From Amphiscolops sp. MND2022 (taxonomy: Eukaryota): DNA of 64,000 nucleotides. Made by a program: the position numbers and the translations under genes. Shown piece after piece: positions 1 through 8,365 of the stretch (within the stretch, counting starts at the first letter, position 1; each line of letters starts with the position of its first letter). The stretch is taken from contig OZ076420.1 of NCBI GenBank assembly GCA_964187785.1, forward strand, positions 20,274,001-20,338,000. Direction: 5' to 3'. Below the pieces are notes generated by a model. The model ran no database searches, was not told the DNA's origin, and worked only from the letters and a program-made list of their open reading frames with translations.

Positions 1-1098
1 CGATTGTCATATCAGCCTGAAGTCAATTCAATTTACAATTTACAAAGACTTTTTTCTAAGATAAAGCGTATTCATAATGCTTCTGTATCTTTTGTATCTT
101 TATTGTGTCTCAAAACCTAGCTACATCATCGGTACTGAAATGACAGTAAACACAAATATCGATAAACTGAGTAACATGAATCTAAAATGAATTGGCAGTC
201 TTTCTGCCGGCATTGCTACTCGGTATTTGCGTCGGTCTTGAAAAAAAAATGACAAGATAGGAACGTCCGCGAATTTCGGTCGAAAATATTTTTTCAATCT
301 TCCTGATATTTTTTGCTTTGCTCTTATCTGACTGCCATGGTTTTTTACAACAGAATCAATAAACAAGCTTTTAACCAAGAAACAAACCATTGCAGCTATA
401 GTGGTGAAACCATTTGCTTCTTTAGCAATGGCTTTTTTAGTTATCAGCTTTTAAATAAAGTGAAATTGGTGAAACAAGTCTCAGGGAAAGATAAGGTACA
501 TCCTTTGAATTACTAACGATTTGAAAGACTAAATTTAGAAAAAAAAATTCATAAACGCTTTTCCATGGCTGATACTAGATCATGAATATATATGGCCACT
601 GCAATGAGGTTTTTGAGCTAAACTATGCTGAAATTGTTGAAACAAAAATTTTCCCTAGTTTCCACACATTTGGGTTCAAAGGATAATCTTCTAAAAGATT
701 ATTCAAACTCGCTTTTTGGGTCAATAACTTTCGTAATAATTGCAAACGAAAGTCCCTTAGAAGTACAGAAACGTAACAACCACCTTTTCTCGACTGGATT
801 TCCACTTTTTTTGGATGTATTTATTGAAAAAAGTAACACAGACGACAATCGCTTTTGTGTTTTTTCTCTCCAGCTATTTTATCTGCTATAATTATTTCAC
901 GACATTCCTCCTTAGAAGGGGGAAAAGTTCATTTCACCCACGGAAATTGGGCAATGTGTTACTTAGCTGGAGCTAACTTGATCTTACCTCGCATTAAGAT
1001 CTATTTAATTTTACTAACATTGAAGAATATATTTGACTTGTATATATTTTGCGAATAAATTATTAACCGCCACCAACAATTGAGTATGTTTGAGACAT

Positions 1099-1322
1099 TC
1101 AAATGGCAATAGCGAGAACTTTACTTAGTGGAATGCAGTACCAGAATTTGAAGCCACAGTGCATGTAATCTGCATACCCCAGCTTCTGTTCCGAAATGCA
1201 GATATTCTTGTTCATGTCATATTTCTCCAAGCAATGCAAGAAACTGCCAATTTCATCATTATCATCAATGCATGATCTAGCTTTGGACCCGCAGTCATTT
1301 TCGTCTTCATAGGTATGCTTAC
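1099..1322 (-). CDS. Terminal exon of an unknown cysteine-rich protein (six-Cys domain 2): (G)KHTYEDENDCGSKARSCIDDNDEIGSFLHCLEKYDMNKNICISEQKLGYADYMHCGFKFWYCIPLSKVLAIAI*
   Basis: Manual translation, not in the ORF track. Acceptor TGTTTTAG| at 1324-1323, phase 1, joins in frame to the exon ending at 2251. Cys spacing C-x6-C-x12-C-x10-C-x14-C-x6-C mirrors the upstream exon. TGA at 1101-1099. Confidence 0.8.
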
Positions 1323-2250
1323 CTAAAACAAGTACCCAAGCTTCAAACTAGGATCCCACCGCCTTCTTTGAAAAATATTGTGCGAGGAATTTTTTCCATT
1401 GAAGGACTTTCTAGTGGTAATGTCGATATAATGAAACGGCGGATATATCCACCTTACGACGCTAATAAAAAAGACCGTATGATTGCGCTGTTCTATTTAA
1501 AACACCCCCTCCTTTGAAACAAATTTCAAATGTGTTCTTGATAAGCTGTTTTTTTTCAAAAACGAAACACCTTTGAGAAATAAGCAGCATTGGATGAAGA
1601 AGTGATTCAATTTGGATTGAATTTGATCAACTCTACGAGCGCATAATTCTTTGTTCAACCCTTTAACAAACATCAGCTTCTACGTAGTAAATAGCCGACC
1701 GACCGCTGAAGCATTTATGTTTTGCAGAATTTTATAGGAGCCATTCACGATTAAATTTTTGATTCATAAGGAAGTAATTTTTTTAGATCAAAAGTGTCCG
1801 ATTCTTGCATCGGCTTGTTTTTGTTCCGTCAAATGACAGACTTCTGGGAAAAATACACTTTTTGTAGACTTTTCGACTAAGGTCTAAGTTCTAATAAACA
1901 TTTAAAGAATCCCACCTTTGGTTACACACATATGTCAGTCTTTTTACACAAGACGACACAAAGAAATTCTCGCTTCACGTTTTTTGGTGTTTTGAGCTTT
2001 TAAAGTTTCGCAACCACTCGCAAGTGAAAAATGCATGATGGATCCTCTTTCGATTTAGTTGGCACTCTAAGACTTTTTGAAATTTCCTCAAAACTTTTCT
2101 TGAGCGGCATAAAGAACTTTGGCCTTTTTTGAGTATCAAACGGACACCAAAATGGGCCTTTCCAGGTTTGTGATTTTACTTTAGTTTTATTATTTCCAAG
2201 GAAATATTTCGTTCTGCAGTGAAGCTTGAAACCAAATGAATTCTACTTAC

Positions 2251-2463
2251 CACCCATTATTTCAGTTACCAATTTGTCGCAATATTGCATGATGTACCCA
2301 CAACGAACAAACTCTCCGTGTCCTTCCTCTTGTTCGTTCACGCATTTTGTGAAGTTCCCTTCCGTTTCCAGACACTGCATAAAATTGCGAACCTTCTCGA
2401 TTTTTGGTTCACACTCTTGCATTTTTGTTCCACATTCCAGCAGATCCATGCCACTTGTCGCTT
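2251..2463 (-). CDS. Exon of the same cysteine-rich protein (six-Cys domain 1): (E)ATSGMDLLECGTKMQECEPKIEKVRNFMQCLETEGNFTKCVNEQEEGHGEFVRCGYIMQYCDKLVTEIMG(G)
   Basis: Lies within track ORF 2243..2518. Canonical donor G|GTAAGT at 2251/2250. Candidate phase-1 acceptor CTGTTAG| at 2465-2464. Spacing C-x6-C-x12-C-x9-C-x13-C-x6-C. The 5' end of the gene is unresolved. Confidence 0.75.
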
Positions 2464-5400
2464 CTAACAGCAAAGTTATCACCAGAAAAATGGGACCATA
2501 TTTATTATACCCCCCCAAGCGAAAAAGAAACGGTTCAAATTAGGGCTAAGTTTATATTAAAGATCCATCTTACTTGAAAACAAATTTCTGCGCCTTAAAC
2601 CGATAACTCTGGCTGTTGAAAACTTATCATTTCTACAGGAACCCAATATCTACGCTGAAAAGACGTGAAAACCTTGCAAAAGAATAACTTTGATAGTAAG
2701 AATGTCAACCCGAAACTACATTACGGAAGAAATGAGCGCTGAGATGGACTCGTTTAATCTCCATCGTTCAACCTCTCTGACATGGGAAAGTGTTATGATT
2801 TTCCGATTGGCAAAATTGTGATAAGAATTTTCAATTCTTGCAGAAATATATTTTTAACGTATTAAATGTATTTTTGGACACTAAATTGAAATGAGCCCCA
2901 TCTTTGTTATATAATCCTGAATCAAAGCATCGCATACAAATTTTGCATGCATAATGCACAAACAACAAAGTTTCATACTGATCTTCGAAAAAGTTTTTCA
3001 CTAACCAGCTAACATATAAATGCCACAAAAAGGGAGCAAAATGGAATTCACAAACGAAATTTTTGTCATTGCGAGGCGTTCTGGTCTGTTTTGAATCGTG
3101 TTCAGCCGAAAGTCATTAATTGGCCAAATTTACATCATAAAAAATTGAATAATCACCACTGTATTTGAATCAGTGTTACACAACTTATCAAATTCAAAAT
3201 AATTGAATTTGGATAGTTTTGGAATGATTGTATTATTTAAAAGCGATTTTGATCTTCAAAAGTATTCGATATTTGAAAAGCAAAGTTCTTGAAAAATTCA
3301 TTTCCCGTAAAATAACAGACAAATTTTGAAAACATAAACTGGGCCAATTTTTGAAATTCAGACATACGATCAAGCTTCCGGTTTTTGAAATCCCAACCTA
3401 GTGAGCCAGAGATTGTTAGGCTGAATGAAAACAGTCTACCAAATTCCCTTATTTATGAAAACTTTCAATATATGAAGTATGACAATTTTTAGAGCTGACT
3501 CAAGTTTAAACTTCACAGAAAAAGTGCCAGATGTAATCATTAGTTTTTTTTACGCTTGAAGTTGTCTTTCAAATACTTTTTTTACAAAGAAGCTTTAATG
3601 ACTTGAAAAACTTGAAAACTTGACCGACTATTTGATGATCAGCTGAAAGTTTTAGTTGAGTGAAAAATGACATCTGAACAAGACTTTCTGAACTCTTGAC
3701 CTCTGCATTCCATCAAAGACTCATTGCTTATCTATCTTTCATCCAAAAAGAGCTTTTTAGCAACATTCAATTAACCGGTCAACCAATTTAGTCGAAATAG
3801 AAATAGCACATCAATTGACGTGGGCTGACAAAAAATGAAAGTGTATGAATCGGTTGCATGAAAGTGGCAAAAAAGTCGACAAAAATGCAGGGTGGGACTT
3901 TTCGATTATGCTGTTTAAAATCGGTGCCCTTTTTCCAAACTATGTCCCCATGCCAAGCCACGGTTTCACATTTGCCTTCGTTTTCAAGAACTTACCACAA
4001 AACTAGGCATGAAATAAGAGATTGAAATAAGAGATTTTAACGTGCATCCGGCTCAAAAGAAACATAATGCATTAATCAATACACCACAATCACCAAATAC
4101 TGAATATTTCGGTTCGGTTCAACAGTGTTTTGAGAGAAAAACGCCTCTATTTGAGGCAGTATGACTAATTTATTTAGTTTTGAACTCTTTGCCTTTTTCA
4201 TACCTACAAAAACTTCTAAAAACGTAGAAAAGCTGAAAAATGTTCGACAATTCATGTTTCGACTATTTTTTGACTCTTCAAGTATTTTTTCTAAAAATTA
4301 AGAATTTCTTTTCCAACATGTATGCCTAGTAACACAAAAACGGAGTGTTCTTCAAAACTGCAGTTATTCTAAGTTACAAAACATCCAGCTTTTGTTGAGA
4401 TCAGCATAACAGGTCTATCGACACAATGTAAAATTATAAAATTTCGATGAAAAATTCGAAATGTGCGGTATCAAATAAGCACATTCAAGATGGCCGACCC
4501 GGAAGGTACGGAAACCGTAAAAGAAGCAAAAAAACGCACAAAAAACACCCCCACCCAGCCCGAGAGAGAATACCCCTCCACAGAAGTATCCCCGAAATCG
4601 CCGTGCGGTGCCATCTCCCTCGGAAGACGTCCCAGCTACCAGCGGAACCCGAAGAATGGTCCAAAAGATGAAGAAACTCAGAAGTTTGCATAGTTAGCAT
4701 GTGCCATCGCGCAAACCCAAGACGCGCTGGCACTGACGCCTGATGTTTTCTTAGTCTGTTGTACTGTATTTGTGGTTTTCGCAGGTATTTGGTGATGTTT
4801 GACCCCTATTTTCGTTATTTTAGACGTTATTCATCTAATTAAAATGTACTTTAGCTAAACCCCTGTTTTCGGACCTCAGAGGTATGTAGAGTCGCAGAAA
4901 CGTTAGAAACCTTAGGATACGTTTTTACAGGCTTGTGGGACGTGTCCGGACCTTGAGTACGCCGGCACGTCGCCACGGAGCTCTAACTGAGGAGCCTCTG
5001 TAACGGCAAGCTGTTGTCGGTCGCTTAACACGTTAACAGAGGTGGAGGAACCTGCAGGAATGGGTAAATCGCTCGGGACGGGCGCCCATCACCACAGATC
5101 CATTTTGCCTCCAGGGGTGAAATACGTCCCGAGGCCGTGGGTGCTTCGACGAATACTGTCCAACCGGTCCTAGTCTTTGATTGCTAATAGTAGCGGGCAT
5201 CTTCCGGACTCTCTGAAGACCACCGTTTAACTAGCTTGTAAAAACAATGCCAAGAATAAGGTAAATTTCCAATTTCAGGGTGACATGGGTACTAAGTTCT
5301 AAAATGGGGAATAACGTCTAAAATGCCAAAACTAGCGCTTGAGCTAGCTAAAACCAGTGGAAATACATCAGAATAGGCACGAATATGGCAAACCACACAG

Positions 5401-8365
5401 CTACAAGTGGGGGCGCATGGGCTCCAAGCACCAAACAAGGATAATTAAGCCAAAAGACTCATTTTGCTGGTTTCCGCTACTTAAGGTAGCATAATGCTAA
5501 AATCAAAGAAAACCAGGGTTAGCACCTGAAAAAGAGTCTTTTTATGAGTTTTTTTAGCGCATGGGCTTCTTCGTTCTCTGTCTTCTCGCTCTGTCTTGCT
5601 CGGTCCTCCTTTTGCATGGAAAATGGCGAAAACAGCGAAAAGAGCAATCACATGCCCAGTGCCACGTCACACAGCGGATTAGAATTTTTGACAAAATTTC
5701 TGAACATGTCCAAGTCGCAAAATCGCTGTACCAGAGGTTCCCGTTACACTCCTTTGACGTTTGAAAAAGTCGCTCTTAGGAGACCATTTCGGGATTAAGA
5801 ACTAGTGTCTAGGGCTGTAGTAAGACAACGGTCTCCTGTTTAAGCACCCTAGGCATTGTCCCATTTCTATGATGTACTCTGCTAGGTGGACGTTACACAA
5901 GGAAACGAACCAGGCATTTCGTCTTCGCAGGCTATGACGGGATTTCCAAGGTTTTGGGTTGCGTTAGAATCTCATCTTGAACAGAAAGACAGAAATAGTT
6001 TGATCCTCACAAAACAACAATGCCGCGAAGCAAACAGGATTGAAGTAGTGCGCTCACAAACAAAAGCAGCACCTGAAGGCAAAGTTGCATCAAAAACTTG
6101 AATGGGACGATTTGAGAAAAGTTGAATATGTGTCATTTCACGCACTGGAAATAACATGGTGACTGTGTAGTCTTGCAACAGAATGGCAGTGATACACCTA
6201 GTTATCATGAAAGGTTAAAAAAACCTTTTGAAAAAATGCGATTCATGAAACCATAATGTTATATTCGGTTCAATCCGGTTTACATGATTACATGACCTCT
6301 GCCGAAATTCGGTCTACAAACTTACAGACTGTCTAGTACCTAGATACCAGAGTTGTGTACTAACAAACTCCATCTATATTAAATTACATTTGATACATTT
6401 GTACAACTGTGTTGCAAAGAAAACAGTCTAGAACTAGAGATAAACTTTCATTCTTATTTCATTCCCATTATAGCAGTAGAATAAAACAATAAAACACATG
6501 AAACGTTTTCTTGCATCAAAACTTGAGAGAGATTCGGGGAACAGATTTGAATAAAAAAGCCAGAAGAAAAGATTACATCGATTACAACAAGGACCCTGAA
6601 AACCTACTCAAATTCTCTGGGGGTTATTTACCCAAAACGCCACGGTTGATGTTAGCTCGAGGCGGAAGAAATACTCATTAAAAGGTTGTGGTTTGTTCCC
6701 CAAATTCAACTGTTTGTTAGCAGAAGCAATTTTTTTGTGAAGGCAACATCGCAGTGCTATTGAGCCTGATTTTGTTTTTCTGATTTTCAGTTAGTCGATG
6801 TTTGCCTTATCAAGATTCAGTATTGCAATTCTCCAGTTTTTCATTCACCGCATGGTCTTAGACCCAACAGTTAATCGAATGTGGAATTATTTTGTCTTAT
6901 CTTGAGCATTAGCAGCAGGGTATACACTGAAGTACCAAAAAGATAATGAAACTAGAATTGGCTATCGAAATTTTTAAAAGCGCAGGCTCATTATTTTTTA
7001 AATTATTCATTTTACAAAAAAGTCACAAGAGCAAAACTCTCAAATCAGAATTGTTGATCAGAACTACCGCAGTGGTTTTCCATTATTTTAGTACTACTGG
7101 TCAAAAGAAAAACCTTTCAATATCAATTTTGAATCCTTTGTACTCGGTTCTTCAGTTTTCATTTTAGGAACGTTTCTGAAAACGCTTTCTTGAAAAATGA
7201 ATGCCCCAAAACAGATGTCAATTCGACGAATCAAATCAAAGACCCAAAGACTCAGGCATATTTCGTTATCGAAGGCGATTTTTTAGATACTGCATTATGA
7301 GTTTCGGGAATTGCCAAAAATCAAAATTAGACCCAAATTTACAACAAATGTAATCATTGCATGATTTCGTAACAAAAACTACCGCCGTAGTTCTGATCGA
7401 AATTTGAGAAAGTTTCACAACTACGACATTTGTGTCAATGATTATGTAAAATTTAATTGCGATTTGATTTTTTGTCAGCGAAGTCGAGTGTCTTTAGTTT
7501 TTTGGTATCCTAGTGTAGCAATGGTGTTTTAAATCATTTTGTCTGTACATTCTGTGCCAATTAATTGCCGATATCTATCTTTTCATAGCACGTTTTCAAA
7601 TCTTTATTACCTGTAGAATTCTTCGGATGCGCTTTTCTTTTGAGAAAAATTTAAGCTGACCTGCTTAAAAACGAGTCGGCTGTCAGCTATTCCCTATTCA
7701 ACGAGACAGTCTGAAAAAATTTATTGTTCAGTCTTTTTTGTGATTTTCAACAATATCTTGAACATCAAACTTAATCACGAACAATCAAGGAAAGTAAACA
7801 ACAACGAAAATTTTTGCCATAATGAAAACTGCATTCCAAATCAATAGATTTTTATAGCCTTTAATTCTCAGACAAAGGCTGTAGCGCCAATTCCATTTTC
7901 TGTTCACCATCAGTGTTTGATTTGCGGTCTTTTCCCAGTTAGCATTTCTCGGGTTTCAAAAACAAAATGCTGCTTTTTCTCTTGAGAAAATCCCATTAAA
8001 GCGTCCTACGTTAACTGCTGCCTAATTTCTGTGGAGATGCGACGTCAACAGATTACATAGATACCTGAAAGCTACCAGGGAGACTTAATCGAATTTATGG
8101 AGCAAATGGTAAGTAATTTTTAGCGGTGTGCAAACCTCGTAACTAGCTTTCTCGATTTCCTATAGCTCCCATTGAAGGAAATATCACGTGATATTCAGTT
8201 ACTCTAACAAGAAACTGATAAAGAGACAAGCTCTAGTTTTCTAGCACTAAAAGCACACGCTGTCATTCATTACCCTTTGACGAAACGCTCTAAAACGGTA
8301 AGTTTTTGCGCGTGCACTCAAAATGTTCACACATTTTCTTCCGGCTTCTTACGCTTGATAATAAA

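Follow-up and report, generated by a model that had tools for sequence, protein, structure and literature searches.

A probable secreted-protein gene with two exon-encoded six-cysteine domains, and its two paralogues, in Amphiscolops sp. MND2022

Lineage-restricted families of small secreted, disulfide-rich proteins are common in invertebrate genomes, and several described systems combine helices with paired cysteines. CHCH proteins are made in the cytosol and imported into the mitochondrial intermembrane space, and they have no cleavable signal peptide. Saposin-like proteins have nested disulfides (C1-C6, C2-C5, C3-C4) and often occur as tandem repeats, and the nuclear magnetic resonance structure of Aplysia attractin likewise has nested disulfides, which hold two antiparallel helices. 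Attractin is a water-borne peptide pheromone of 58 residues with six cysteines and three intrachain disulfides, made from a precursor with a signal peptide (PMC3484142). The coral SCRiPs and the species-specific peptides of Hydra are taxonomically restricted families of secreted cysteine-rich proteins (PMC2652719, PMC10945409). Here we describe a gene on the minus strand of a stretch of 64,000 nucleotides (nt) from Amphiscolops sp. MND2022 (contig OZ076420.1 of assembly GCA_964187785.1; C12:20274001-20338000), which as a whole is called the window. Judged from sequence comparisons, the locus is probably an intact, functional three-exon gene for an acidic secreted protein with two exon-duplicated, disulfide-stapled hairpin domains, and is one of a family of three paralogues.

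The coding part of exon 1 (3006..3069) begins at ATG 3069-3067 and comprises 21 codons and one base up to a phase-1 donor, G|GTTAGT (GT 3005-3004). Intron 1 (2464..3005) is 542 nt long, GT..AG, and in phase 1. Exon 2 (2251..2463; 213 nt, phase 1-1) carries the end of the predicted signal-peptide cleavage region and the first six-cysteine domain, D1. It is followed by intron 2 (1323..2250; 928 nt, GTAAGT..TTTTAG, phase 1) and by the coding part of exon 3 (1099..1322), which encodes the second six-cysteine domain, D2, a hydrophobic C-terminal tail, and the stop TGA 1101-1099. The spliced coding sequence (3069-3006 / 2463-2251 / 1322-1099) is a complete open reading frame (ORF) of 501 nt that encodes 166 amino acids (aa). 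All four splice sites are canonical, all 12 cysteines are present, and the 166-codon ORF is intact.

An earlier reading of the DNA letters, here called the sequence-only reading, had proposed an unrecognised spliced gene with two exon-encoded six-cysteine modules. The two paralogues described below, which keep an identical exon/intron plan, bear this out, and most of its details stand as well. The ORF at 2243-2518 does read through a donor (G|GTAAGT, GT 2250-2249) and then meets TAG 2245-2243. Joining 2251 to 1322 is in phase 1, removes 928 nt (2250..1323), and gains the second domain up to its TGA. Given the acceptor at 2465-2464 (exon start 2463), both exons have a split codon and nine codons ahead of Cys1, and the motif CG-x5-C is present at both ends of D1 and of D2, as quoted there. 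The cysteine spacing is 6-12-9-13-6 in D1 and 6-12-10-13-6 in D2, as that reading had it except for its "13/14" in the fourth gap, which is 13 in both domains. D1 and D2 are 32% identical over 57 aa (BLASTP, E 3e-12), far beyond chance. Duplication of a phase-1 exon probably gave the two domains of about 60 residues, one each in exons 2 and 3.

Two sister genes of the window gene, of the kind that the sequence-only reading had suggested looking for, are present on contig C6. The 1.07-Gb assembly was searched in six frames with D1, D2 and a six-domain profile as queries. Exactly six domains, and so three genes, were found genome-wide: two domains in the window and four on C6, where they make up a tandem pair, gene A (L003/L008) and gene B (L009), some 9 kb from each other. 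All three genes splice at GT..AG sites in the same positions and phases, giving proteins of 166, 164 (A) and 162 (B) aa with 12 aligned cysteines each. The D1 exon of the paralogues has an AG acceptor, a split codon and nine codons before Cys1, and a phase-1 donor about 10 residues past Cys6; the D2 exon runs on to a stop. Their intron at the position of intron 2, in the same phase, measures 927 and 1383 nt by coordinates.

The three copies are diverged, and all keep complete ORFs, canonical same-phase splice sites and all 12 cysteines. Per-domain identity among them is 30-48%, and the paralogues are about 35% identical, so that synonymous sites are saturated. A blastn comparison of the window gene region with 30 kb of the C6 locus gave three matches, namely a promoter block, part of exon 2, and exon 3; no intron similarity between the window gene and the C6 paralogues was found in the same comparison. 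The window gene differs from its paralogues in having a hydrophobic rather than an acidic C-terminal tail and a putative signal peptide that is six residues longer. A tree built from the six domains places the D1 copies in one clade and the D2 copies in another (support 100/99). The duplication within the gene therefore came before those that gave three genes, all of which have retained two domains since then. From the conservation among paralogues we infer that the window gene is spliced and expressed.

First exons were sought by scanning upstream of each gene for an ATG with a hydrophobic core and a phase-1 GT donor, with looser thresholds for the window. Each paralogue has one clear candidate, L008:4223-4268 for gene A and L009:4989-5034 for gene B. 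These exons have 15 codons each and end in ...LLLA or ...ILLA, followed by CAG|GTTAG; the exon of the window gene (3069-3006) ends in ...CGIYMLA, followed by CTG|GTTAGT. The first exons of all three genes are homologous in peptide and in DNA, and the alignment extends into upstream non-coding sequence. An upstream phase-1 exon was one of two options that the sequence-only reading had offered for the 5' end, and it is the one that was located. In each of the three genes, the junction of exons 1 and 2 builds A-x-A directly after the hydrophobic core (AEA, AVA, AGA). A-x-A is the classical -3/-1 pattern of signal peptidase. We infer that the window gene product is directed to secretion by the signal peptide of exon 1 and is cleaved behind the conserved A-x-A.

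The predicted mature proteins of the three genes, with length and charge computed from one residue past the A-x-A site, have 143-147 residues, an isoelectric point (pI) of about 4.5-4.8, and 25-33 D+E versus 15-16 K+R. Each has one N-x-S/T sequon. The mature product of the window gene would be an acidic, soluble, extracellular protein of about 143 residues with 12 cysteines. AlphaFold2 was run domain by domain on the six-sequence alignment. The D1 model has a mean pLDDT (the per-residue confidence of AlphaFold) of 91.8, with helices at 3-30, 33-39 and 41-65. The D2 model has a pLDDT of 77.5, with a core above 90, and shows the same three helices and a low-confidence C-terminal helix. D1 and the core of D2 alike are predicted to form a long antiparallel hairpin with a short loop helix, in agreement with the helical modules that the sequence-only reading had expected. 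The two Cx6C motifs place their cysteines seven residues apart on each long helix. The disulfides would be nested, with C1-C6 and C2-C5 stapling the long helices together and C3-C4 tying the loop helix to helix 1. Such a protein could serve as a rigid extracellular module for binding or signalling, either as a ligand or as a carrier.

Searches for relatives outside this genome support the earlier statement that the module could not be assigned to any known family, in that the Pfam, PDB sequence, fold, ESM Atlas and 1.84-billion profile searches gave no confident match. In Pfam, D1 has only a sub-threshold CHCH match (14.9 bits, E 0.03; cut-off 27.2), D2 is without a match, and nothing besides CHCH and BIG2_C appears at E<=10. 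A word-indexed protein search with the 91-aa ORF returned no candidate. The ESM Atlas searched with D1 gave no usable match by features and nothing specific by shape. Foldseek found no match at E<=0.001 in the PDB (best 1.4), and VIA-align against 48,161 chains gave Z <=6.7, all of them generic hairpins or coiled coils. A profile search of PDB sequences gave nothing significant, the best match being a CHCH-type subunit (E 2.9). A profile search of 1.84 billion representatives returned no family member beyond this species' own paralogues: its four true matches are ORF fragments that stem from genes A and B and lie on contigs of the assembly ERZ25074608, and the remaining matches were dismissed as low-complexity repeats. 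A transposon or viral protein was also considered and rejected on the count of three genes in 1.07 Gb, the lack of a Pfam match, and the single-copy depth. Contig depth over the gene is about 28-64 (58-195 in run X4), which is the single-copy level, versus 1e4-6e5 over the transposable element at 4249-6021. On this evidence, the three genes form an undescribed family, restricted to the species or to its lineage, with members seen in no other species.

CHCH (PF06747; Cox17, NDUFS5) is otherwise the only family of Pfam or the PDB that scores at all against these domains. As is predicted for them, it is a helix-turn-helix hairpin with two facing cysteines per helix and two inter-helix disulfides. 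CHCH proteins have twin Cx9C motifs, whereas the motif here is Cx6C (CG-x5-C) in six of six domains and the only x9 gap is that between C3 and C4 of D1. A third, predicted disulfide in the loop, much longer helices of about 25 residues, the two tandem domains, and a putative signal peptide instead of Mia40-type import also set the present proteins apart. CHCH membership was rejected on Pfam score, on the Cx9C motif, and on targeting, as a putative signal peptide is found in all three genes. Saposin-like proteins (SAPLIP) resemble the domains, as these are predicted, in being small, helical, secreted and six-cysteine, but saposins pack four or five helices into about 80 residues, and their spacing differs. 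Neither SapB_1 nor SapB_2 was matched in Pfam, and the saposin fold is absent among the Foldseek, VIA-align and Atlas matches (E>1, Z<=6.7).

Attractin is similar to one of the present domains in size and, as far as the predicted fold goes, in general design. It is a single-domain mollusc peptide with another cysteine spacing, whereas the present proteins have two domains. Attractin membership was rejected, since Pfam gave no match to it at E<=10, the profile search of 1.84e9 proteins gave none, and the top fold matches do not include it. As a functional analogy it is the closest, and it is offered strictly as such. The SCRiPs and the Hydra peptides are comparable in that they are small, have a signal peptide and a cysteine framework, and occur as a few tandem paralogues with homologues confined to a narrow lineage. 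Their cysteine frameworks are different and there is no sequence relationship, so that the likeness is one of kind and not of family.

Sequence variation was compared at all three genes. When genes A and B are compared between the haplotypes found in this assembly and in ERZ25074608, 4/984 substitutions and 0 indel columns fall in their exons taken together, and 69/6967 substitutions and 104 indel columns in non-exon sequence. All haplotype alleles of the paralogues are intact. Among the variants listed for the window gene in X3 (second haplotype) and X4 (second sample), the exons have four synonymous changes, one E>D, and no indel. Three of the synonymous changes and the E>D are those listed for exon 2 in X4, and the fourth is the one variant listed for exon 3 in X3; none of the variants listed for X4 is in exon 1. 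Intron 1 in X4 has at least 14 single-nucleotide polymorphisms (SNPs) and at least 3 indels. These comparisons, together with what the three diverged copies have kept, are good indirect evidence for a living gene.

Several observations weigh against the proposed three-exon gene for a secreted protein. All four runs that cover the stretch are genomic, and their contigs pass through both introns at even depth. Two scans of JGI metagenome contigs for exact exon-junction strings, covering the window gene and gene B, found none. The putative signal peptide was assigned by eye, from the h-region and the A-x-A rule of thumb. All four exon changes that separate the paralogue haplotypes alter an amino acid, conservatively and never at a cysteine, so that polymorphism by itself is no proof of purifying selection. 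Finally, a methionine five residues before Cys1 is kept in three of three D1 domains, and a start there would give a shorter product without a signal peptide. If translation began at this methionine (ATG 2449-2447 in the window), exon 1 would be non-coding or unrelated and the product would be a non-secreted 12-cysteine protein, for example a CHCH-like protein of the mitochondrial intermembrane space or a metal-binding one. The CHCH architecture, a helical hairpin with paired cysteine motifs, is compatible with this, as are the weak Pfam match to CHCH and the best PDB sequence match, an NDUFS5-like subunit. Both matches are, however, far under threshold, and the motifs are Cx6C rather than Cx9C. 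Moreover, all three genes retain in exon 1 an ORF, a hydrophobic core and a phase-1 donor, together with an in-phase acceptor and A-x-A at the junction, which is unexpected for a non-coding leader. A start at the conserved methionine is thus highly improbable. Still further from what is observed is the other option of the sequence-only reading for the 5' end, a start at ATG 2499 in an assembly that is short of one T. ATG 2499-2497 and the run of five Ts at 2490-2486 exist as described, and one added T would open the frame and yield a hydrophobic N-terminus, the single-exon signal peptide MVPFFLVITLLLEATSG. Yet the letters in question belong to the 3' end of intron 1, and the homologous exon 1 sits 542 nt upstream. 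In each paralogue the homologous position holds an AG acceptor, upstream of which the frame is not open. A hydrophobic translation is what a polypyrimidine tract yields: codons 1-18 of the ORF (2518-2464), from which the "signal-peptide-like" IFLVITLLLE is read, are pyrimidine-rich, non-coding sequence at the 3' end of intron 1. The missing base did not materialise either: the X1 and X2 contigs span 1127-2522 and show 0 differences and 0 gaps there, and the differences listed for four runs from two samples include no indel at 2486-2490. A start at ATG 2499 is extremely unlikely, and it is also unnecessary, since intron 1 accounts for that stretch as its polypyrimidine end.

The remaining alternatives concern the function of the locus rather than its 5' end. 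The window copy might be a silent or decaying duplicate, an unexpressed pseudogene-in-waiting, with the two tandem C6 genes as the functional members. That the runs covering it are genomic DNA only fits this, as do its position alone in DNA rich in transposable elements and the differences in tail and signal peptide noted above. The intact 166-codon ORF with four canonical splice sites and 12 cysteines does not, nor does the promoter block conserved with gene A. The listed exon variants, four synonymous to one conservative and without an indel, beside an intron 1 rich in SNPs and indels, also speak against decay, and we regard a silent duplicate as improbable. With the same gene model, the role could instead be that of a venom or toxin, an antimicrobial, or a matrix component (capsule, skeleton, mucus). 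Lineage-restricted, tandem families of secreted cysteine-rich proteins in invertebrates are often of this nature, as in cnidarian examples (PMC2652719, PMC10945409), and an acidic, cysteine-rich composition fits a matrix or calcium-binding protein. On the other hand, the acidic net charge is atypical of membrane-active peptides, no similarity to any toxin family was found by sequence or by fold, and there are three copies only, with no sign of a large expansion. Such a role is unlikely, but deserves serious consideration. The acidic pI argues against a classical cationic antimicrobial or membrane-lytic peptide in particular. For the three-exon gene, a soluble extracellular binding or signalling module is the most likely role, placed ahead of a toxin, antimicrobial or matrix component chiefly on account of the acidic charge and the small copy number; this preference is weak. 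More speculatively, and by analogy with attractin, the three genes might found a new type of extracellular domain, a "twin CG-x5-C" three-disulfide alpha-hairpin, duplicated in tandem as a phase-1 exon, of recent origin in this lineage, and used in water-borne or tissue signalling or recognition. This broader proposal is doubtful.

With this analysis an invertebrate genome that lacks annotation gains a completed gene model, with its putative signal-peptide exon, and a family of three members. The gene is also a clean case in which copying of a phase-1 exon has added a domain to what appears to be a lineage-restricted secreted protein. The cysteine framework 6-12-9/10-13-6 was not found described. 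The predicted stapled hairpin is a simple, rigid scaffold and is of some interest for peptide engineering and for the origin of orphan secreted proteins. A small, secreted, disulfide-rich protein is a familiar sort of gene product, and the stapled alpha-hairpin is a familiar class of fold; the result is a modest one.

The region upstream of exon 1 contains a conserved promoter or 5' untranslated block (3085..3142, minus strand), which was delimited by blastn against the paralogue locus and by a three-way alignment. It matches the sequence just upstream of exon 1 of gene A (76% over 59 nt, blastn E 4e-4). The element GGCCAATNAATGA / GGCCAAT (window 3125-3119, minus strand; L008 ~4167-4173) lies about 50 nt upstream of the ATG; it is common to the window gene and gene A and is absent from gene B. 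GGCCAAT may be a promoter element of the CCAAT-box or homeodomain type. At the other end of the gene, a candidate poly(A) signal, ATTAAA (1004..1009, minus strand), read directly from the sequence, lies about 90 nt past the stop.

The surroundings of the genes are repetitive. In the window, 4249-6021 is a very high-copy, transposon-like repeat that has many internal deletion joints in four of four runs and a summed contig depth of up to 1e4-6e5, compared with about 30-60 in its flanks; it lies about 1.2 kb upstream of exon 1. At C6:16114000-16132000, several repeats of 550-630 bp, 87-94% identical to one another, lie between and before the tandem paralogues. The haplotig L013 departs from the assembly by a large block with an integrase (rve) gene upstream of gene A. 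Six-frame searches of the whole genome gave no match to the insect odorant-receptor family (7tm_6, PF02949) or to the arthropod cuticle family (Chitin_bind_4, PF00379), which makes an arthropod host improbable. ERZ25074608, an ENA assembly filed as a metagenome, contains long contigs (L011-L013) of this animal's genome, one of them 100% identical over 20 kb and the others haplotigs of 98% and of 96-99% identity. As a result of this filing, prokaryote-style ORF calls of single animal exons sit in protein collections.

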